A DNA stretch of 62,978 nt, the filler included, from Hyphochytrium catenoides (Eukaryota > Protista > Hyphochytriomycota), in the NCBI GenBank assembly GCA_900088475.1. It is 7 parts of 7 records of this genome, joined end to end, with 100 filler letters (N's around TTAATTAATTAA, not from the genome) between each part and the next. Parts side by side here need not be neighbours in the genome. Positions count along the whole stretch, not along the records: positions 5,072 to 17,164 come from FLMG01004746.1; 6 more parts are not named here. The stretch is one strand, 5' to 3'. Under the pieces are notes generated by a model. It was not told the origin of the DNA and made no database searches. It saw only the letters and a list, made by a program, of their open reading frames with translations. Below, piece after piece: positions 1,575 to 17,859 of this stretch. The position numbers were made by a program, and so were the translations under genes. Numbering within the stretch: the first letter of the stretch is position 1; every line of letters starts with the position of its first letter.

Positions 1575-3065
1575 AAGCCTGAGGGCTCGCCCTTTTAGAT
1601 AGGGGTAATCCAGCCTTGACTGGCAGGATTATTTGTACGAGTAAATCGTACTTTACTTGCTCAAGCAGGATTAGACCGTAGTACTCCCTTCTTTATTAGC
1701 TTGGACCTCTTTTAGAGACTATTATTCGCAGCAAAAATTGAGATATGATGAATAATAACCGAGTATATTTGTTTTTTATTTGGAATAGTAGCCGGGTATA
1801 TTTGTGTTATAACAATAGCTGGTAGGTCTAATAACAGCTATATATATAACTACAACAGGGAGGACTTTGGAGTGGATTTGGTCCCGCAGTATAGTATGGG
1901 GAATAGGGAAAAGCGGAACAACGACTACAGAGTACAGCGTCAAAAAGAACTACAGTACAATTGGACTATACATTACCGAAATCTGCCCCCTTTGGTGCAA
2001 CAGATACACCCTTTGGCATTTTTTGAAAATGAACTCTTGAACCCAACGACGAACAATATGCTTTTGATGAATTTATCAATAGCTTTTGGCTGCGCCTAGG
2101 GCTCGCCCGACGTTACTAGTGCGTAATCCAGCCTTCGGCTGTATTATTAGTGGAAGATGCTTGGATCACTGATTTAGTTGTACAAGTAACACCAGGAGCT
2201 CTCCATTCCTTCTACATGTAGGCCTAGAGAACTGAGAACTAGTTCTATCTGTAGAACTATTTCCTAAGCCTTAGGTAGACTCTCTTAAGGACCTCCTCCC
2301 TACTCGTTCACCCACGCTTCCTACAGCAGAGCAGTGAGTGAGTGAGTGAGTGAGTGGATGGCGAAACTTTCTCAACTCTCGACTGCTGCAGGAGTTGCAG
2401 GAGTTGCGTGAGACAGGATTGTAGGTGATTGCGTCTCAGGTAATATGAGGTTAGAACACAAATTCGCGTAGACGCACGCGATGGGTCTCGGCTTCTGGTG
2501 ATACGTCTCGCGTTACAAATTCGAGTTATGTTCATAAAAACCCTTTCGCTTCTTCTCTGACCCCTTTCGTATCACCAGAGTACACAAAGAGCCAACCCAA
2601 AGAAAAAGCCCAAACAGTGATTAGTGAAAAACCAACTAGTGAAATTTTGATCACAAACACACACACACGCACACACAGACAGACACACAGACAACACGAA
2701 AAAGTCCATTCGTGCTGAAGCCCCTGTGGGTTGAAATTGAGGCTCGCCCTTCGGGCTCGCAATTAGTTGGTGATTACAAAAACTGACCAATCACAGAATT
2801 AACGACGTTTGCATTTGTTTTCAAAGTCCTTTTGGCTTCTTTTCAACTCCCTTTCATGTTCCTATCTACGGAAGCACTTACATTTATTCGAACCAAGAAA
2901 GCATATCGAAATGGTGATTGGGAACAAATCATGAATTAACGTCAACCTCGGAATTGTGCTTGTCCAGGGGTACGATTTACTACCTGTGAACAGACAGACA
3001 GACAGACACACAGACAGACTCAAGGCCCTCCCGCTGGGAAGGCATCAAACCGCTTCGCTCGATTC
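1575..3065 (+). mobile_element. Cluster of non-autonomous Helitron/Helentron-like remnants
   Basis: Repeated GC hairpins: GGGCTCGCCC ~1584 and ~2099 (the latter followed by CTAGT), TAATCCAGCC-TTC-GGCTGTATTA ~2125, GCCC-TTC-GGGC ~2746. (GTGA)n at ~2334 and (AC/ACAG)n tracts at ~2655 and ~2990 lie upstream of hairpins. Confidence 0.45.
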
Positions 3066-3296
3066 CTTTGTTCTCTCTATCGTTTTGTAGCTGAGATGTA
3101 GGGGCTGTCTTTATTGGCGTTAGATAGTCCTTGCTCCTTGGTAGTGGGATACCTTTCTATGGAGCATAATATTATACAATGGTACTTCTAGTGTAGTAGT
3201 ATATCAACGTCATGGTTTAGAGGAATCAATTGTCTCTTCCATAGTAGTAGTAGTAAGTATACACGTTAGTACTAATACCAGTTCTATATTTATTCT

Positions 3297-3871
3297 TTAT
3301 TCAAGTAGGGATCTTCTGCTTTTTTTACCTCCGTTTGTCTGGCTCTCAGAAGCCTTTTTGCTCAGCAGCAGTGATACTGTGATACGTCTATTCTCCTTCT
3401 CTATCTCCGCTTGGCTGTTCTTCGTCAATAATCTCCTTCTCTCTGCATCAGATTTACGATCACGCTCCTTCTCTTCAGCTGTGCGGCTGTTTCTCAGCAA
3501 CTTCCTCTTTTCTGCAGCCGCTTTCCGATCAATTTCCATCTGTTCATCCGTTCGGCTATTTCTCAAAAATCTCCTTCGCTCAGCAGCAGCTACTTTTCGA
3601 TCCATTTCCTTCATTTCGTTGCTCCGAGCAGCTCGGTATTTCCTCATCCGTTCTACAGCGGCAGAGGAGGAAGTGGTTTGTTTGCCCTTCCTTTTGTCCG
3701 TAGTAGGCTCCCTCTTCATCTTCTGCTGCTGCTGCTTTCTGCTGCTCTTTGACATTCTTCCCGTTCTGCAGCGGCAGAGGAGGAAGAAGTGGTTTGTTTG
3801 CCCTTCCTTTTGTCCGTAGGCTCCCCCCTCTTCATCTTCTGCTGCTGCTTTCTGCTGCTCTTTGACATTCT
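3297..3871 (-). pseudogene. Decayed ORF with ~23-aa STPR-like charged helical repeats (Helitron N-terminus-like)
   Basis: RSNEMKEMDRKVAAAERRRFLRNS / RTDEQMEIDRKAAAEKRKLLRNS / RTAEEKERDRKSDAERRRLLTKNS; an out-of-frame 113-nt tandem duplication at ~3655-3871. Confidence 0.4.
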
Positions 3872-5071: not shown

Positions 5072-5094
5072 GAGAAAGGTCTATGTAGGAGGAG

Positions 5095-6170
5095 ACGTAA
5101 AGCGAGTCTTGGGCAGACCTCTCTCCCCGCAATTGACTCCTCCTCTCCCATCTGCTGATGACAAAGCTACTACTGGGCTCACGGACTCTACCCATCCCCA
5201 GGGCTCCAGATCGTAACTTCCTTTGTTCTTCTTCGGCTGCTCACTCATGGCAACAGACAGGCAACGAACGCCAACCTGAAGAGTATCCCGTTCTTAGGCT
5301 CACCTTACCTCCCTCCTCTGACGTTTCAGCTAATAAAGAAACCTCTGCGGTTCCCTTGCTTACCGTATGGAGGCTACCACGGTCTCCTCAACATGGTCGG
5401 ACTCTTCACCCTTGTCGTCACCAGGTCTACCCTCTACCAACTTCTCAGTCGGGACGGCCAGACGCTCAGTCTTCCTATGAAAGATCTCAGATGTACTTCC
5501 CTGACCACTCCTGAGGTAAGAAGATATGTTCCAGCAGTAATGGCTTTGCATGGAGGAGGGAAGGCTGGGCAGGGCTCGTAATCATCAGAGAGAAGTCCGT
5601 GTTTGGTGGAGCTAAGTCTTTTGATTGTGTTCCCTTGCTGTTCTTTCTTCTCCAATGTACGCTTTGCAGTTTATAATCAACCAACTTCTTTGTCATCGCC
5701 ACCAAGCGCGTTGCAGCGAATCTGGAGGAGGTGCGGGAGGCCTATCCCTTCCGCCAACAACAGTCACAGCGTGTGGCAAACATCGTCGCGGTCGGGTTTA
5801 TCTTCCTCCTGGAAACACCTTTCTGGCTGAAGCATTTCCTGACGAGTGGCTCACTCACCAGAAGTATCAATGATAACCTACGATGGTTCACCATCTTCCT
5901 TTGGCTCGCCACATACCCTCCTCCCGTACCTCTACCTCATCCCTATTCAACAACTACTACCAAGCGCGCAGCAGGACACCAAGAAGAAGCAAGAAGCCCC
6001 TGCGCAGCACGAACTCTCTCATCAGCAGCAGCAGCAGCCGCAGCCAAGCCTCGAGAGCATCGCGAAGCAGCGGCAACCCGGAGTATCATCAGATTATCAG
6101 ACGCAGGGAAGGTTCCAGACGTCCAGGCAGCGACCTGCTAAAGGAGCTCTCAGGCTCAAAAGGCGGCCAA
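5095..6170 (+). pseudogene. Pseudogene copy of the 7TM-RGS gene (inverted relative to 12172-14040)
   Basis: Aligns by eye to the intact copy, including upstream DNA and the intron (GTAAG 5516, TTTGCAG ~5669). Has a ~0.5-kb deletion removing the start and TM1-3, frameshifts, and homology ending at the RGS-box start just before an N gap. Confidence 0.85.
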
Positions 6171-6424
6171 TGTTAGGAAACGGGNNNNNNNNNNNNNNNN
6201 NNNNNNNTTCCTCGGCCTGTGTAAGTGGAGAGGGCCGCACTAGAGTACTCTAGGCTAAGGTATGTCAAGGGGGATCCGTTACTGAAGTGGACGCTGGTCC
6301 ATGGTGGGAGGTTAAGGGGGCCCCTAGCGGCCCTGGGGGTTTCATGAGCCATCATCAGTCTGGAGCCTGTTCCCCATACATTTAACCCTAGAGGCAGACA
6401 CTGACCATCATCGTGTGAGGACGA

Positions 6425-6472
<48 letters not shown>

Positions 6473-7540
6473 AAGAGAGAGAGAGGGAGAGAGAGCACTT
6501 CTGGCTCCACATCCATCAACATCCTGGAGCCTAAAACAGCAGATCCAGAGCTGTCCGTCTAGCGCTGCTGGAGCCCTGCCTGCTCCCTCCATCGTACTCC
6601 GTCCCTAACCTCCTCCTCGTGATGAGGAGTCCAACCCGTTTGTTGACGCCGCTATCCTTCTCTCTCTTCTCTGCATGTCTCTCTCAGGATGAGTCCAGCA
6701 GACAAGATAGCCATCATCCTGGACTGGATATCTAGCGGGCAGGAGTTACTTGGAGCGCTAGCTCCTCCTCCCTCCTATGTGATACTAAGCCGCCACTAGC
6801 CACTAAGTTAATAAAGGCTCTGCTCTCCTCTTCATGATGGCGCCGGTGCCCTCAGCTATATTCAGCTCCCTCCCCAGCGTCCCTTCTATCTTTCGTCGCC
6901 TTTCTTCTCCTCCTCTTTCTCACCAGCCACCACCTTTCTGATTACGTCCTCAAAGGTCAACCTTCATTCGGCTAAAGCTGACTCTGTAACCTCCGTCGCT
7001 TGTCCCATCGTAGTAGTGGGCTCGTAGATGCCTTCCTCATTCTAGCTGAGTGATAGACAAGGCACCGCTGAGGGTGAGGATGTGCTGCCCTTCTTCATTG
7101 GCCATCATACAGGCGTTCTCCTGTCAGAGGAACTAGAACCCGAGCCCGCACCACGGCTCTCATCACCTTCCCACACTCCTTCCTATCCTCGCCAGGATGG
7201 GTCTCCCACGGAGAGAAAAAGAGGAGTCAGCAGTGCGTTCTGACAGCTTGTCAGGAGCTTTAGCCTAAGATTGGTGACTGCCGACGCATAGGAAGGACAC
7301 TGTGTGGGCCGCGGTACCTATGGCTCCTCGTCTTCACAACGCGAAAAGCAGTTCATTAGTGAAGCCACTTCCTACTCCTCCAGCAGGCCCTTACAAGGAT
7401 CAAGCTCCTCTTCAGAAGGTGACACTAGCACGTTAAGATATATATAACAAAGTTGCTCAACCTTTCTCAGTTTGACGGACACGCCATGGAGATAGCCGGC
7501 CCCTGCCTTCGTTCTCATCGACTGTCTCTCTAACGATAGG

Positions 7541-10500
7541 ATGCCCGTGGACATGACGTCTAGTGCCTTTGATGATGACGATGATTACGTACCGATTGAG
7601 GAAGAGCTTGAGCGGCTTCAGGCGAATGGAGCCGTGACCGCGTGCCTGCCAGAAGAAGGCGATGGTAAGCTGTTGGCCTCAAGGGCACACCATGTCCTCC
7701 TCGACAGCTAGGCATCACACAGAGCCCTGCTATCTTCCTTTCAGCTAGAAGTAGTGCCGACATCGCATCAAAAGGACCGAGCTAACCTCAGATGTCTAGG
7801 CTATAGAGTTGCTAAAGGACTGGATTCTTTGTGTTGGTTGTTTCTTCCGTCATGACAGCGAGATGACTAGATTCCTTCTTTTTTCCGTGTAGATCTCTCG
7901 AAGGTGGACTACCTGAGCACCGCGTTGCAGCTGATACTCGAGAAGGAAGCAGGTTCCTCTTGGCTACTTCCCACTGGGACGCTACGCGCTGCTACCCAGA
8001 TGCTGGACCCTTCCGTCAGAGATGACGAATGCAAACAGGAAGTGTTGGACATCTTAGGCAAGATGGGAGGTTTAACGGAGATGCAGCTTCAGGAGAAAGC
8101 CCTTCGTGCAGCGAATCCTGGCGCTTCAACGCAACTACCGCCCATTGAGGATCTTCTTGCCATCCTAGAACAGTTGAGCGTCAGGATGGCAACGAGAGAG
8201 GTTAGCGACGAGACGGAAGACGGAACGACGCGGGATGTTCTTTCCACGCCGCCCATCCCTCCATTTGGTCACTTCTGCAAGGAGCTAATCGTGGCCGCCT
8301 TTCTCTATCTGGCCCTTCGACACGGTATCGACGGCGACAAAGCTGCCCGGATGCTGACTTTCGTGAAGAGAGCAACCTTCCTGCAGCGTGCCTTCAACAA
8401 TCGGCTGCAGCCCGGTCTATACTTCATGGTAGAGGACGATAAGGAACCAAATCGCTTTATCCTGGCATGGAAGGAGGTAGGGATGATGACTCCTCTTTCG
8501 TTTGCCACGCAAACCAGCTAGCGGACGCTAACTTCTCTTACTTCTCCTGTCTGCCCTTGCTCTCGGCATTATCTGTTTTGGCAGGCTACGGAGCGTGGTG
8601 TCTCCCATACCAGGCCAATGTCGTCATCCCTGCGTAGAGGATCGATGACCCAGGGCGAGAGCTTTGTCATCCCAAGTTTCAGCTGCGCTGATCTGACTCA
8701 CTACTGGTGTAAGCAACACATTGACTCCGGATACCAGCTTATGGACCCTAAGATCGTCAGGTATCTGGTGCACAAGCTCTTGCACGACACCGGCTCAGTA
8801 GCAGTACAGAGCACCTCTTACAGAGACCAGGATCGCTTTGACGGCGCCGATCTAGATCCAGCAAGGGCCGAAGTCATGGACAGCTATGACCATGACTACG
8901 TTCTGTTGCTTGGTAAAGTTCAGTCTGGGAAGACGAGGGAGACTCTTCGCATGGCTTGGATGCGCTATCTGATCACCGGCGCGCCCAGCATCTTTCTCCT
9001 TCGAGGGTCGCAGAGCGCGTACTATGAGATGGGCAACGCTGTACAGACATTCAATGCAAGCGTTGATGCTGCGCTAGAAGAGTTGGAACAGAGTGGAGCG
9101 CGAGGAATCGTGAGAGATGTCTATCACATCCATTACTTTCACCTGCACAGCGGGAAAGTGAGCGGGATCCCTAAGAGGCTCATGGCTGAGAGGCGCTGCA
9201 TTGTGTATGCTCGCCTCTGTACTGCGATGAACGTACAGCGGCTGATGACAGTGGATGTCCCTCAGCTGATCAAATACTTCGGCGTGACCGCCGATGGTGC
9301 TCTCAATATCAACCTCTTCGTTGATGAAGCGCAGAACCTGTACCAGACCGAGGGACTTCGGACCAATCGCCTTGAATGCTCATTCTTTCAGGACTCCTAC
9401 TCTGCTGACCTCTTGAGAGAAGCGGTGGCAGACTATGTTCAAGGCCAACCAACCATGCCAGAAGAGGAAAAGAAGGCTATTTTGCAAGCCATCGACCGCC
9501 GAAGTCGCACGGGGTACCAGTTCTATAAGAGCTTCCGCTTGCGATGCGAGGTACTATGAGGGGCCAAGTGTATGCAACTGCTGCTCAGAGCAAGCAGATG
9601 CCAAGGTTCTAACTACCTGATCCTTTGCCTTTCCTATAATCCACGCTCTGCTGCTTAGGTTACCGCGACACCCGAAGCGTCGTACTTTGGAAGCCTAGAG
9701 AATCAACCTTCTCCCGTCATCCTCCGCCTGCCAGTCCCTCCGGACTACCGAGGGGACGATCTATCTCTGCCAGAGGGACAGCTCATTGGTGAGATCATTT
9801 ATGAGGACGACACGCTTGAGCCTATTAAGCCGAGGACGAAGGAGCTCCTGGCAACTCTTGATAGAGGCGGGGCGAAGCGGCATCCTCTGCAACAAACTCC
9901 TCACGTCATGAGAGCCCTGGAGGCAATCATTGCAGAGGCGGAGGCGGAAGAGAGAGATGGAGGTCACCATCATTTTATGATAGCTTTCCCAGCCACAGTC
10001 AACCAAGCCTATGACAAAGCAGCAGAGACAATCATTGAGATGTGGTCGCAGTGCAGACTGCCCGTGATCGTCCTGTGTGTCTATGGCAGCAGCAGCAGGA
10101 CCCACGACGGTAGCGCTCGCTTCCTGGGGAACGCTGCATCCATACCTTACCTGAAGAACGTCAACCGCGTTGACGGAGACTTGAACATTTCTAGGGCAAG
10201 GGACCGGACGCGACCGTTAGGCCAGATGATCGTATGTGACGATGGCGTCACCAGGAGGGTCGTGAACTGCTCGTTTGCCCAGTCAGGCCAGCTCTTCCTT
10301 TGGAAGAGCTTCCCAAGCGGAGAGCAAACCGTGGAAAAGGTCTCGCTGCCTCCCGAAGGTGATTTTCTTCTTCGAGATGGCTGCGTAGCAATCGAGGGCA
10401 TCGCTCCCAAATCCCAGTACTATGGCGTTCGAGACGTGATGGATCTGATGTATCAGTCTGCGCTAAAGTATGGAAAGTACAAGCCTCGCGATGTCATCCT

Positions 10501-11593
10501 CATCAGCATGGGCGATAGACTCATCAAGGAAGGGATCCCTCTAAAGACTAACTGCCACCATTGGGGCCCTACCGACATGGCTGTCGCAGGCACCAAATGG
10601 GTCAAGAAGAGTATGGATGCCTTGATTCAGCAGCTGGGAAGGCTGGCTGGGCCGCGACAAGCTGATGACAGGCCTCCCAGACGACATTTCACGCGCAAAC
10701 AAGGCATAGAATGGCGGAGGATTCTTCACACTGTGAAACAATGCGGCGACGCCGTCGATGCTGGGATTCGTTCCTCACCAGAGAAGCGTCCTCGTGAGGC
10801 GATTGCAAGCAGTAGTATGGACGGTCTCCAGGATTTGCCTGACGATAGCCTTCTCGTGAGAAAGAAGCTCCAGCCTGCAAACCTGATCAATGATCTGAAG
10901 CAGAACAGCAAGAGTACTTTTGGAGATGTCATTATCTCTGTTCCTCGAGGTCCAGTAGAGTCCGCAGGTCACCAGGAGCAGCCGAATCCTCAGGAGACCC
11001 ACGTCAACGAACCTGAGGGGCTACGTTACGGGTTAGGACGGTTGCAATGGCTCTTCAAACAACGTGAAGGTCCCGGCCTCCCTGTCACTATTGACGGATT
11101 GCTTACCAGACACACAGAGATCCCTGGGGTCTCCTCCCAGTGTATGAGAGATCGTGTGCGAAAAGACTTCTTGAAGCAGTGCAAGACTGACGAAGAGACT
11201 AGCGAGGACACCGCTGAAGTGCTCACAGACCATCGTGGAAGACTCAAAGCAGCCTTCACTATTGAGGAGCTTCAGACTCTGTTGCCCCACCTCAAAATGT
11301 GCCGGTCCAGGGACCCTTACGACCTGTTAGTGCCAGACATTGTAAGGGATGAAGGAGACCAGCACCGAGGAGTGACAGGCTTCTATTATGTGCCGCTTTT
11401 TCTTCAGATCTTTGTTGAGGACACCACGGAGCCGGTGAGATGGCTTCATGAGTGGAAGCAGAGAAGCAGAAGCAGGTATTGCATTAACAAGGACTACGAG
11501 CCCGTTATCCTTGAGAGGATGAAGAAGCTGGACCAGATGAGAGCGCCTGACTATGCTAACAGGAATAGCGGAAAGAAGGAATCCTTCTTCTAA
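7541..11593 (+). CDS. Spliced SF2 helicase/ATPase, Z1-associated-helicase-like, ~1202 aa; exons 7541-7664, 7893-8476, 8585-9550, 9659-11593 (5' start uncertain)
   Basis: All three GT-AG introns are phase-compatible with CTAAC branch sites. Motifs in order: GKVQSGKT, FVDEAQ, VTATP, LPVPPDYRG, GDRLIKEGIPL, DALIQQLGRLAG. Confidence 0.8.
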
Positions 11594-12171
11594 GCCATGA
11601 CATCGACTATAACTAATGCATAAGCAGTATGTTCTTCTTTCTGAGCAACGCGCTGTGCGGCGGCTAATCTCTTCAGACTCTTCACTAACTATATCTGGGC
11701 TCTTGATGACAATAGGAAGAAAGGGATGATGAACGGTGTCAAAGATCCACGAGCCCCCATACCTAGGGCTGGACCAGCATTGAGGGGCTAGCAGATGTTG
11801 GTGGGAAGGGAGGAAGTGCTAGTCTTTCGATTGATTAGACATCTAAGCACGGATAAGCGCAAGAAGAACGAGTCCGCTGTACCGTTGGTGGGTTGCTGCT
11901 CTTTTCTAGTTTGGTATCTAAGACGACAAGGGCTTTTCAGGGCTAACATCATACAGTCAAGAGCGGCGGCGGCTGTTGTCAAGCTTGCTAGCCAATTGCT
12001 GGAGGGACATAAAAGAGTGGAACCTTCATGCGGTTGTGAGTCCTGATAGATGGGATCGATCACTTTGTCATCGTAGAAGTAGTATCCCTCCTACTTCTTC
12101 TTGTCTTCCCATCCCCGGTCTCCGTCCTCGTAACCCGATCCGCCATTTGAAAGGAGCAGGCAGGCATAACA

Positions 12172-13766
12172 TCACCTCAGCCATCGCTTTGTCTGGGAAA
12201 CAATGCTTGAGGGCGCCACTTTGCCGACTGTAGGTACTTTTTTCGTGCCGTATCCACCAGGACCTTCCTGCTGCCCAACAGACCAGTGAAGGAAGCGATT
12301 GTACGGCCCCAATAGCATCCCATAGACCTCATCCTCAGCTTTCTGGAAGAGATCGGCAGCTATTATGCCATCCTTACCGCTCTGGACTGCTTCCTTGATG
12401 GATGTCATGATATGCTTCCGCAGCGAGGAGCTGATGTTAATCTCATAAGTGGCGTTAGGAGACAGATAGGTCTGAACAATATCTTGAGCAGTCGCTACGC
12501 CCGCCCGCGTGTCTGCTTTCAGATAGAAATCTTCCAGAGCCATCAGGAACATCACATTCTCCACAGCGAGCTCCCTAACCATATACTCTTTGAACTGCAG
12601 CTGGATGTCCTTTGACCCTGAAAGTTCCTTTTTCAGGTCGCTGATGTTCCTGGCCTTTCGAGTCTCATACTCCGCGCTGCCGCTGCTTCGCGATGCTCTC
12701 GAGACCTGGCTGCTGCTGCTGAAAGAGTTCCTGCCAAGGGCTTCTTGCTGCTTCTTGGTTTTCTGCGCACTTAATAGTAGTTGGATAGGGATGAGGTAGA
12801 GGTACGGGAGGAGGTATGTCGCGATCCAAACGAAGATGGTGAACCATCGTAGGTTATCAAAGATACTTCTGGTGAGCGAGCCATTCGTCAGGAACTGCTT
12901 CAGCCAGAAAGGTGCTTCCAGGAAGACAAACCCGACCGCGACGATGTTTGCCACACGCTGTGACTGTTGGCGGAAGGGATAGGCCTCCCGCACCTCCTCC
13001 AGATTCGCTGCAACGCGCTTGGTGACGATGACAAAGAAGTTATTTGTCACGAGGTTGATTATAAACTGCAAAGCGTACATTGGAGAAGAAGAAGGAAGAA
13101 GAAGAAGCAACCAAACAAAAGAGTTAGCGCCACATCTCTCTAGTGGTTATGCGGCTGTCCAGCGTTCCCTCCTCCATACAAAGCCATTACTGCTGAATCA
13201 TATATTCTTACCTCAGGAGTGGTCAGGGAAGTACATCTGAGGTCTTCCATAGGGAGACTGAGCGTCTGGCCGTCTCGACTGAGAAGTCGATAGGCCGGGT
13301 ACACCATGGTGACGACAAGGGTGAAGAGTACGACCATGATGATAAGACGGTAGCCTTCATAAGTGGCACGCTTCCGGACAAACCAGCTGTTCACATCGCC
13401 CGCCGCCATACTGGCCTGACACCTGTATGTCAGCCAAAGATGGAGGTGCGTTGTACAGCCATAGGCCGCGGTAGGGATATAGGTCAGCTGGACTACGAGG
13501 ATATGGACCCAGCACGGTATGGTAGGCGTTAGCAAAGGGTGAAGGTAAGAGTAAGAGGCAGTCATCATGGACAGTGTGCTGCCCCCGACAATGTGAACTG
13601 GGGCCACTGTTAAAGGGAACATATTGCGATACGTCCATAGCTTCACCGTCACGTATATTGCAGCTATGCTCAGTGCTATCTGCACGATCCAGGCCAGATA
13701 GTATGCCCAAGAACCTGTTCCTGAGGGCCAGAGTGAGAGGTGTGGGTTTGGGATCTCCCAAGCCAT
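12172..13766 (-). CDS. 7TM-RGS protein (seven transmembrane segments fused to a C-terminal RGS domain), ~482 aa; exons 13766-13212 and 13065-12172
   Basis: A phase-0 146-nt intron (GTAAG..CTAAC..TTTGCAG) joins the two ORFs. Seven hydrophobic segments, loop Cys in IPCW and LRC, and RGS signature FKEYMVRELAVENVMF..IVQTYLSPNATYEINISS..LFQKAEDEVYGML..YNRFL. Confidence 0.9.
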
Positions 13767-15503
13767 TGTCTCCTAATAATTCAGATCTTATTCATCCTTT
13801 AGCTCTAGGTCATGACCATTGCTTGCTGAGCTGGTGGCGCTAATGCTTTTCCGACGGGAAGCAAGGGAACCGCAGAAGGCTCTTTATTAGGTGGATAGTT
13901 AAGGAGGAGGAAAGGTAACGGGGCTTGTTGCCATGAGTGAGCGGCAGAAAAAGAGAAATGGAAGTCGAACGACGCAGCGTCCTAGGTATGGGTAGAGTCT
14001 AGGGGCCAATTTTTAGGGAGAGCTCCGCCAAAGACTCACTTTACTTTCCCTTTGAAGAGTCCATCTTTCCGCTCCCCTCTTGATTGCCTTCCACACCACT
14101 GTCTCATCCTTTTGATGACTGCTGGCAACAAGCCCCACCTGCTGCTGCTAATAAATCAAGCAGATAGGAAGAAGAAGAAGAGGCAAGGCGACAGGTGCAA
14201 CCACTTCAATGGTTGTTCACGGTCAATACTACGACGCCAGAATACCCTGGCTGCCTATAGAAGAAAGGCGCCCGGGGAGGACTCGCTCTCCTGCTGCCTT
14301 CAACAGGTAGAGGAAGCGAGGTTGGAGGAGCACAGGGGGGGCGGCCCTGCCTGCTGGCCTGGCCAGAGGCGCCGAGGGCCGGCCCTGCTGCCCTCCTCCT
14401 GCTGCCCTTCTTCCAATGCAGCAAGGCCAAGGGACAAACGACCAGACTTCCAGGCTGTTGAGTCACTTATTAGCGGTGATACGTCACAGATACACTAGTA
14501 GCTAAATGACAGTGCTTTCGCACCAAATATTCCAAGGGAGACATATCACCGACCCGTCCGTTACAAGAATCATTTGTTCGCCTGTCTCCTTAACAGAGCG
14601 GGGTGGGTGGGCAGGCGGGTAGGGCCCCTGTTGGAGACTGTTAAAGTCTTCGATTTTTTTGTTGTCTGGTGAGTGACAGAAAACCCTCAGTGAGAAGAGT
14701 TGAAAGGAGAGAGAAGTGCGAGACAGAAGAGATGACAAGGGACGTTACATGTCAGAGAATAAAGAAGAGACAGAGTGGCACGAGATGATGACCCAAAGCA
14801 AAAGAAGGGAACACAATCAGTTAAGTTTAGACAGAGCGCGAAAGAGAGTGCTTCATAGACATCATCTGATGGAGCGAAAGACAGAGCGCGAGGCCGGCGT
14901 CTCTCTCTTTTTTCCCTTCGTCTCCCGTCATTTTGTTCCTTCCTCTCTTGATCAACAGCCATCATCACTGCCCCAGCTTGGATCACCATAGCTTCCTACT
15001 AGTCCTTATCATGACGCCACTGTTAAGAATTAGGAGCCGCCCACCGCCCGCCGCCCGCCGCCGCGGTCATCATCATTAGTTGTTCATCTTCGTCAATCTT
15101 TGTCCTGGCTGCGGCGGACATCATGATCTTCACAGAGCTGGGCAAAAGTAACGGGTCGTGGTTGAAAGAGAGGTTTCAGAAGATGATGGCTTCCTTTGTT
15201 CTAAGTCGCGTCTCCTCTCTCGGCCATAGCAGTATTAGCGGTCGAAGATCTCAAAACTCTTCTCGTCGCACGGACAGCTAGTAGGTGGTTATACAGCAGC
15301 TATCATTAGAGCGCCGACGGTGCTGCTGCCTCTGCTGTCAGTCAGCAGCAGTAGAGGTCTACGCGCGAAGAGGACGGAGTATCATAATTAATAGTCGCTG
15401 AGAAGCAAGTTGATTTGTCCATGATGCTCTTAATCTTCGTTTCTTCTCTTGTTGTTGATCTTGAGTCTGCGGCATGATTTATTCATGGCTTCGAGCGATT
15501 ATG

Positions 15504-15670
15504 GCCGCCGCCGATGCTTGTCAATATTCTGATGCAATGAGCATCGTCATCAGGGCAGCAAGCAACAGACTACAAGGCAAGCAAAGCCGCCGCCGATGCT
15601 TGTCAATATTCTGATGCAATGATGAGCATCGTCATCAGGGCAGCAAGCAACAGACTACAAGGCAAGCAAA
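15504..15670. repeat. Tandem duplication of an ~82-nt unit
   Basis: GCCGCCGCCGATGCTTGTCAATATTCTG...GGCAAGCAAA occurs twice; the second copy has a 3-nt insertion. Confidence 0.9.
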
Positions 15671-16037
15671 GTCCATCGTCGGGCCAGGGGGTTGTTAAGA
15701 GGATGGAGTTCTTGTCATTGTGCTACGGTTGGACTGGGCGTGAAGCAGATTATGACAAACCGTGTAAAACTAGGAAGAAAAACGTGCCAGGAGCTTTATA
15801 CTGCGTTACGTTCCTCTTTTCCCTAGCTTTTCAGTACGGGGGATCTCCTTTTCTTCACGAATGGTCCGGTGGGACGCAGCGGAGTCGTTTCCTTTATCAT
15901 GGGCGAAAAAAAGGAAGGCAGCAGCCAAACGTCGTGAACTGACGTAGAGGGTGACGGCTAAAGACGACTTAGACCAAACCCAACTGATATTCTGTAGGCG
16001 AGTAAAGCCACGATAGAGATGATGATGGTACCAGGAA

Positions 16038-16084
16038 CACGAGGTGGTCTATTGAATGAGAACGAGGTGGTCTATTGAATGAGA
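16038..16084. repeat. 23-nt tandem duplication
   Basis: ACGAGGTGGTCTATTGAATGAGA twice. Confidence 0.85.
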
Positions 16085-17859
16085 GAAAGGAAGGACACCA
16101 TGGGAGGGCAGATTAAGGCAGCAACGGCGCATTAAGATCTGACACAGATAACGAAGAGCAGAGTAGCAAGGCCGTCGTCGCAATGTCTTCCAGCAGCTGC
16201 TATGGGCCGCTGTTTGGGTCAGGGACAGGGCCCGCTAGATGATCCACTTAGAGCAATGCCTTCTGACAAACACTCCTTTCTTAGACTCTGCTTCTTGGTT
16301 CAGGCCCCTTTCCTGTTCGTCCTTCTCTTCCCTACTGCTGCTCCACCGTCCTTAGTGTCTCTCCTTTATTCCAAGGCAACCATTTCATCTCTTCCCGTTT
16401 GATCAATCGCCCACTATCATCATTTTTTCCATGCTGACAAAGCACCGGCCTGGCCTTCCCTCTTTATCCCCTCGTGCTGTTCCTCCAACCATAGCACGCC
16501 GAAGAAGAACTTGGTTAGCCTCATGCAAGCCCCATCGATGACCCTATTATTCTCTACTAGTGAATCTGTGGCAAAGGCGCAGAGAGCGTGGCAAGCGTAA
16601 GGTCTGCATCTCGTCCTCCTTTCTTCCTCGTCCTTCCCTATAGCACCAAGAAAAAAGATAGGTGTCCTCATTCACTACTTCTGGTTTGGTCGACGCATAC
16701 CCCGGAAGAGTGGACTCCGGGAAAGCGCTCATAGACTACCGGTCTTCTGCTTGTGGCTCATCGTGCTGCGCAGACCTCCCAATGAGGTGGGAGATCTCCT
16801 CCTCCAAGAGGGACCACCGACCGACAATCTGTCGCACGGAAGATGGTATCCGTGCATCTCGACAGCTCGCTCCAAGAAACTCACGCCCTCTTATATTAAG
16901 AAGAAGAATTGGTCGTTGAACGTCACATCTCAGTTCCCACGATGAGACAATGCCTCTTTGATCGCCACCCATCGACAACAGCAGTTGTAGACGACTACGA
17001 CTGCTGCTCCTGCTGCTGCGCACCAGAAGAGAGAGAGTAGGAAATCAACGTGGCACCGTCTAGAAGTGGCCGTCAATCAGTGGTCCGGGCGATAGTCCTT
17101 TTATCTAAGCCGCGGATGGAGGTGAGATGACCTGTCGCCCCAAAGTCAAAGGTTTCTCCAACCCNNNNNNNNNNNNNNNNNNNNNNNNNNNNNNNNNNNN
17201 NNNNNNNNTTAATTAATTAANNNNNNNNNNNNNNNNNNNNNNNNNNNNNNNNNNNNNNNNNNNNGCTCTTCTGGTGAAAACCGTTACATTGTGGTCCAGC
17301 TCTTTTCGGATTGCCTCTGCCCAGGTTTAGGCTAGGATTCTAGGAAGTCTATCGCTGTTCTCACTGTTGTTCTATATCTTTTAGGTTATGTGCGAAGGAG
17401 AAGGTTATTGTTGTTCTAAATCTTATTTAGAACCAACCGCGTGGCCCCCAATTCATCTCTTGTGCAGTGGATCCCTTATGTAACACCGGATCTTTGTGTA
17501 TCTTTTGCACCATCCTCTCCCGACGAATCTAATAAGCTTATTTAGGACTAACTAATAAAGGTAAAGCACAAGAAATTTCTGCCCTTTTCGACTCACCCCT
17601 ATTTTGTACAGTTTAGCCCAGAAGGACATACAAAAGATAGGAGGCAATTCTCCCTTTTGGTTCCTCCTTTGCTAGATTCCTGTATATTTAGAGTGGGGGC
17701 GGGTGGGCTCCTGCCATGAGTAAAGTGTATCAGGGTAAGGTTTGGGTTAGGACTGACGGGGTTCCACAACTGAGGGAGCAGTGAAAAAGGGATGGGGGTG
17801 TTTCATACCCTGTGTATGGGTGGGAATATAGATCACCAGGTACATGTACAAAAAACACA

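Follow-up and report, generated by a model that had tools for sequence, protein, structure and literature searches.

Solved helicases of superfamily 2 (SF2), among them the RIG-I/MDA5/Dicer helicase group, FANCM, Hel308/Pol theta, DEAH/Prp43, DinG, and HsdR, provide the structural frame in which a new nucleic-acid motor can be placed, and the motors of restriction systems form a further basis for comparison, namely the Type I/III R subunits and ResIII helicases (PF04851) and CglI. The last of these is distinguished by a Gln in place of Gly in Walker A, a motif VI shortened from Q-x-x-x-R to Q-x-x-R, a loop that follows motif II, and a helical insertion alongside an H/H motif (PMC5861437). The gene considered here lies on the plus strand at positions 7541–11593 of the window, a 62,978-nucleotide (nt) stretch of Hyphochytrium catenoides DNA (assembly GCA_900088475.1), within a 12-kb piece from record FLMG01004746.1 (positions 5,072–17,164). 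It is very probably a genuine and intact nuclear eukaryotic gene of four exons and three canonical introns, encoding a protein of ~1202 amino acids (aa) of which the central ~680 form a two-lobed (RecA1 plus RecA2) SF2 NTPase motor.

Identity between this family and the solved SF2 helicases listed above is 9–13%, and the family differs from them in the Gln-for-Gly substitution in Walker A, in a β-rich insertion in lobe 2, and in N- and C-terminal regions unrelated to theirs; it matches none of the Pfam DEAD, ResIII, Helicase_C, and SNF2 profiles, even weakly. Against the restriction motors in particular, neither the ResIII nor the Helicase_C profile is matched at E values up to 10, the C-core having diverged too far for standard Helicase_C models to recognize it. 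Of the four features that characterize CglI (PMC5861437), only the first, the Walker A Gln, is present. The sequence Q-Q-L-G-R in the Hyphochytrium protein is ambiguous when read by itself, and the register of motif VI was therefore taken from the relatives (alignment A3), in which an invariant Gln and an invariant Arg stand in Q-x-x-x-R spacing, the classical SF2 register and unlike that of CglI. Restriction R subunits (HsdR, LlaBIII, EcoP15I, and SauUSI) do appear among the structural matches of the models described below, where they score no better than RIG-I, NS3, or DEAH helicases. No nuclease, MORC, GHKL, or methylase gene occurs among the neighbors in the 12-kb piece, and a defense role for the helicase, as the original prediction had proposed, is unsupported.

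The gene model joins in frame to 3609 nt, or 1202 codons plus a stop, with exon lengths and phases recomputed from the DNA. Exon 1 (7541–7664) opens with the predicted start codon at 7541 and encodes an acidic N-terminus of 41 codons, ending one base into a split codon (phase 1). It is followed by intron 1 (7665–7892; 228 nt, GTAAGC...TAG, with a pyrimidine-rich 3′ end), exon 2 (7893–8476; 194 full codons of the N-terminal region, ending in phase 0), and intron 2 (8477–8584; 108 nt, GTAGGG...CAG). Exon 3 (8585–9550) contributes ~100 aa of family-specific lead-in and then RecA-like lobe 1 up to motif III, again ending in phase 0. Intron 3 (9551–9658; 108 nt, GTACTA...TAG) splits motif III, which resumes in exon 4 (9659–11593) ahead of a linker, RecA-like lobe 2 with its β-rich insertion, a lineage-specific C-terminus of ~200 aa, and the stop codon at 11591–11593. 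Stop codons interrupt all three frames of intron 1 and the reading frame of the preceding exon in introns 2 and 3. The boundary between exons 3 and 4 falls within the conserved motif III and is free of gaps against uninterrupted relatives in alignment A1. Similarity to relatives extends along the chain in phmmer alignments: exon 3 aa 24–276 aligns to residues 180–404 of P0001, one of the two closest full-length relatives, and exon 4 aa 3–207 and 243–435 to its residues 448–647 and 661–851, and exon 2 shows weak collinear similarity to the N-terminus of the other, P0003. The position of intron 1 and the start codon are predicted, on the basis of GT-AG ends, frame continuity, and an indel allele of 171 nt that is wholly intronic.

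All four diagnostic SF2 elements, motif I (GK[ST]), motif II (DExx), motif III (S/T-A-T), and motif VI (Q-x-x-G-R), are found in the protein. Motif I, or Walker A, reads GKVQSGKT (8912–8935), with Gln where SF2 enzymes usually have Gly, and the form x-x-Q-x-G-K-T/S recurs in all six aligned sequences that include lobe 1 (the Hyphochytrium protein and five relatives). Motif II, or Walker B, is FVDEAQ (9317–9334), with D-E-x-Q/H conserved in A1, and motif III is VTATP (9659–9673), with S/T-A-T conserved in the same alignment. A PPDYRG element follows at 9737–9754. Further downstream are a motif V-like block, MGDRLIKEGIPLKT (10508–10549), with Gly, Glu, Gly, and Lys invariant in A3, and motif VI, QQLGR (within 10616–10657), with Gln and Arg invariant in A3 (columns Q94 and R98). 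The motifs common to the family are x-x-Q-x-G-K-T, D-E-x-Q/H, S/T-A-T, P-x-x-Y-x-G, H-P-L, Y-x-S-S-x-x-H-x-x-G-x-x-I-x-G-N-x-A-A, D-G-x-x-R-R-x-V, P-x-x-x-x-Y-R-I-R-x-x-L-D-L, G-x-x-L-L-K-E-G-x-T-x-K-T, and Q-x-x-G-R-L-C-G-x-R. The family-specific β-rich insertion of lobe 2 (10184–10408, boundaries approximate; exon 4 aa ~176–250) contains the DG..RR.V element, and is delineated by the secondary structure of the model and by conserved columns in A1 and A2. The original prediction of an intron-containing, apparently intact eukaryotic ATPase of SF2 type is borne out by this exact model: the motifs GKVQSGKT, FVDEAQ, VTATP, PPDYRG, and MGDRLIKEGIPLKT were recovered at the places it had given when their coordinates were recomputed, and the junctions it had proposed, 7664/7893, 8476/8585, and 9550/9659, agree with the in-frame GT-AG model, with splicing predicted at each.

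Structure prediction places the family within SF2. An AlphaFold2 model of the P0001 core, computed with A1, has a mean predicted local distance difference test (pLDDT) score of 76.8 and a predicted template modeling (pTM) score of 0.76, and a model of exon 4 aa 1–440 of the Hyphochytrium protein, computed with A2, reaches a pLDDT of 79.4 and a pTM of 0.81. Together they depict two RecA-like lobes with the β-rich insertion in lobe 2; coverage extends over the P0001 core and exon 4 aa 1–440, with the N-terminus represented in the P0001 model by a lead-in of ~70 aa predicted at low to moderate confidence. Foldseek returned 361 chains of the PDB at E ≤ 1e-3, every one of them SF2 (Pol theta/Hel308, Ski2/Brr2, HsdR, RIG-I-like, CasDinG, and RecQ). 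Because the models are two-lobed and their Foldseek matches exclusively SF2, the predicted fold of the family is established as that of SF2. PDB sequences gave no match to single sequences or to the A1 family profile.

Relatives of the gene are very few. Searches were made with single exons, which were joined solely to count GC content at third codon positions (GC3). Queried exhaustively with exon 4 by phmmer, 1.84 billion cluster representatives yielded only 13 proteins at E ≤ 1e-3, the best being P0001 (990 aa, 35% identity, E = 3.7e-53) and P0003 (1019 aa); exon 3 retrieved P0001 (1.6e-46), P0003 (1.4e-36), and P0008 (1.1e-24). P0008 (1218 aa) is the sole relative from EukProt, and the remainder come from Logan, ENA, or JGI assemblies. 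In a word-index protein search, exon 4 drew no match and the A1 profile retrieved P0001 only. No prokaryotic relative emerged from the exhaustive exon 4 search or when 185,579 prokaryotic species genomes were scanned for the A4 pattern, and the A4 scan of metagenome contigs was likewise empty. Neither any exon nor any relative was assigned to a helicase family by Pfam, NCBIfam, PADLOC, or PHROGs. In Pfam, the Hyphochytrium protein and all 15 family sequences lacked any match at E values up to 10, in keeping with the earlier proposal that the gene falls outside the standard DEAD/DEAH/SNF2 families.

Two partial loci were also observed. On contig L011 (38% GC), a family member at 1940–3477 has its N-core and C-core in different frames ~140 nt apart, which could reflect an intron at another position or a frameshift. 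On the 951-nt contig L006, from another sample, a block of 300 nt (543–842) is homologous to the middle of exon 4 (64% protein identity to aa 170–268; dN/dS ~0.09, with dS saturated) and is flanked by sequence without a match in any frame; the block may represent a decayed copy or, in a related eukaryote, an intron-bounded exon.

Variation among strains or alleles bears directly on the reading frames. DNA contigs from three public sequencing runs of one organism contain the exons as well as introns 2 and 3, and one of the three runs diverges at ~1.3% of sites. Intron 3 is present in the X1 and X2 contigs; that of X2 (8508–11800) includes intron 2 from 8508 onward and exons 3 and 4, and that of X1 (8312–11655) includes part of intron 2. 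Across the predicted frames of all four exons, 28 of the 35 listed exonic differences are synonymous and 7 nonsynonymous, for a ratio of nonsynonymous to synonymous polymorphism (pN/pS) of ~0.07, and first, second, and third codon positions account for 4, 4, and 27 of them, respectively. Exon 1 has a single listed difference, at 7588, which is synonymous, as are seven of eight in exon 2 and all nine in exon 3. Since the exonic differences are mostly synonymous, the frames are correct and the gene is constrained; it is under purifying selection. An allele with a deletion of 171 nt (7716–7886), wholly within intron 1, co-occurs with the full form in the X1 and X2 contigs, which suggests heterozygosity or two haplotypes.

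Downstream of the helicase gene and on the opposite strand (13766–12172) is an intact gene for a eukaryotic seven-transmembrane (7TM) protein with an RGS domain (Pfam RGS, 1.6e-13). Part of this gene recurs in inverted orientation on the plus strand at 5184–6086 (corresponding to 12667–13999 on the minus strand), so that the helicase gene sits between the two. The fragment is frameshifted and ~83–91% identical to the intact gene (~83% overall, 81–98% per block), and is missing both ~490 nt from the 5′ part and the entire RGS part. It adjoins a run of N at 6185–6207, and because one inverted arm thus abuts an assembly gap, a scaffolding artifact is possible; the fragment may represent such an artifact or a local rearrangement or inverted duplication. 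Apart from the 7TM-RGS gene and its fragment, the open reading frames (ORFs) of the 12-kb piece have no Pfam match, and neither Rfam nor tRNA scans gave a hit in it. Upstream of the helicase gene, at 6407–6502, is a (GA)n microsatellite of ~95 nt, and a tandem duplication with a period of 82–85 nt and copies 90–100% identical occupies 15504–15671, in a stretch with no recognizable gene. The GC3 of the helicase gene is 0.61, against 0.59–0.63 for the adjacent 7TM-RGS gene, and because the two are equal there is no sign of recent transfer. The patchy distribution of the family makes transfer plausible; if it happened, it was old.

How the gene came to be where it is, and whether it functions at all, can be weighed on these data. 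The absence of any database family would fit a locus without a functional gene, whether its ORFs arose by chance, a pseudogene is decaying there, or the contig is a contaminant, but this view is scarcely credible in light of 1202 open codons across four exons with canonical splice sites, the low pN/pS, intact and conserved catalytic motifs in a confidently predicted fold, the recovery of the same DNA, introns included, in three runs of one organism, and a eukaryotic 7TM-RGS neighbor of the same GC3. A patchy distribution, two paralogues in one sample, and the local rearrangement implied by an intact 7TM-RGS gene on one side and its inverted fragment on the other would instead suit a cargo or machinery gene of a selfish mobile element, either a DNA transposon or virus-like, inserted beside the 7TM-RGS gene. 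That origin is quite improbable, given that the 12-kb piece contains no transposase, integrase, polymerase, capsid, or viral gene, that no terminal inverted repeats were found around the helicase gene, that selection on it is strong and its polymorphism looks allelic, and that its composition is native; the inverted arms, moreover, are gene fragments and not element termini, and may be a product of scaffolding. An Academ-like helicase-bearing transposon was specifically set aside, as no transposase or element termini were found.

A more substantial alternative, though still a doubtful one, is that the gene descends from a Nucleocytoviricota helicase that was endogenized, acquired introns and the codon usage of the host, and has been retained there, a claim about origin that is compatible with a genuine, intact host gene. 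By language-model features, exon 4 is nearest to a Nucleocytoviricota cluster without a Pfam family, and by shape the three nearest clusters of the Atlas are likewise Nucleocytoviricota without a Pfam family (TM scores of 0.50/0.56, 0.50/0.50, and 0.42/0.76). The best match of the two-lobe model in BFVD is an uncharacterized protein of Heterosigma akashiwo virus 01 (HaV01), A0A1C9C5C9 (E = 2e-10, TM 0.42/0.43), and other top matches are M1I2R9 (an unnamed entry), a mimivirus protein, and the CeV-01B protein A0A0N9QIR2; the HaV01 and CeV-01B proteins recur among the best matches of the model of the Hyphochytrium C-core. Like the Hyphochytrium protein, these look-alikes belong to no Pfam family, but they are shorter (~230–790 aa) and are themselves uncharacterized, so that the resemblance yields no mechanism. 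An extremely patchy distribution of 13 relatives also fits a viral source, as does the setting of P0001 and P0003, whose ORFs lack introns and lie on gene-dense contigs next to a histone H3-like gene and a weakly PARP-like gene. On the other side, Nucleocytoviricota proteins rank at the top of BFVD and the Atlas with TM scores of only 0.4–0.56 and modest margins over generic SF2 proteins, no relative turned up when viral contigs were scanned for the patterns of exon 3, exon 4, and A3, and the gene has host-like GC3, three introns, and no viral genes near it in the 12-kb piece. Transfer from a eukaryote to viruses would explain the data equally well. The earlier suggestion that related ORFs occur in giant DNA viruses stands for structural look-alikes in BFVD and the Atlas; sequence homology was not detected in the scans of viral contigs.

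The genes beside P0001 and P0003 raise a further idea. These two relatives, from a single sample, share 43% identity across the aligned core, and directly downstream of each is a convergently oriented gene for an H3 variant of 203–205 aa (L001 3320–3931 and L002 3984–4601, both on the minus strand). The variants combine a normal start of the tail, an open and divergent insertion of ~80 aa within it, and a near-canonical histone fold. The P0003 contig, L002, is gene-dense and apparently free of introns, and also encodes an ORF of 522 aa (5143–6711, plus strand) with a weak match to the PARP catalytic domain (E = 5.5e-4, below the Pfam cutoff). Conservation of the helicase-H3 variant pairing hints at a functional link or at a shared viral or mobile origin; the pairing was not seen in the window or at other loci. 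It is unlikely, on present evidence, that the family is an SF2 motor that has passed between protists and giant viruses and works on chromatin, perhaps to load or evict an H3 variant, with the Hyphochytrium gene as a host-retained copy.

The reading favored here, that of an intact host gene for an SF2 motor, has several points to set against it. The first ~330 and last ~200 aa of the protein lack any match or inferred function, and splicing at all three junctions, as well as expression, is predicted from the DNA. The pN/pS ratio derives from a subset of the variation, with 40 of 73 differences listed (35 of them exonic). The link to giant viruses is structural only, with three scans of viral contigs devoid of sequence relatives. 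Finally, structural matches are generic across SF2, at TM scores of about 0.3–0.5, and no solved subfamily stands out, so that they point to no particular substrate or subfamily. The verdict reached with these points in view is that of a real, conserved, orphan SF2 family with predicted ATPase activity.

A mode of action can be proposed. Both ATPase and translocase activities are predicted, as are the substrate and the biological role. ATP would bind in the cleft between the lobes, where the Walker A Lys of GKVQSGKT would hold the phosphates and the acidic residues of DEAQ would bind Mg2+ along with water; the Arg of motif VI (QQLGR), contributed by lobe 2, would close over the γ-phosphate. 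Cycles of hydrolysis would then open and close the lobes and ratchet the protein along nucleic acid. The substrate is most likely duplex DNA in the nucleus, which is favored by a small degree over RNA. Specificity for a target or partner would be conferred by the variable N- and C-terminal regions together with the β-rich insertion in lobe 2.

If this account is correct, the family would constitute a distinct and very rare branch of SF2, absent from the profiles of Pfam, NCBIfam, PADLOC, and PHROGs and lacking a solved relative, represented in at least one eukaryote by a constrained, intron-bearing gene and accompanied by giant-virus look-alikes. The alignment and models obtained in the analysis would permit a definition of the family. 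Lineage-restricted motors of this kind may have passed between virus and host and may serve unexplored functions in the handling of nucleic acid or chromatin.

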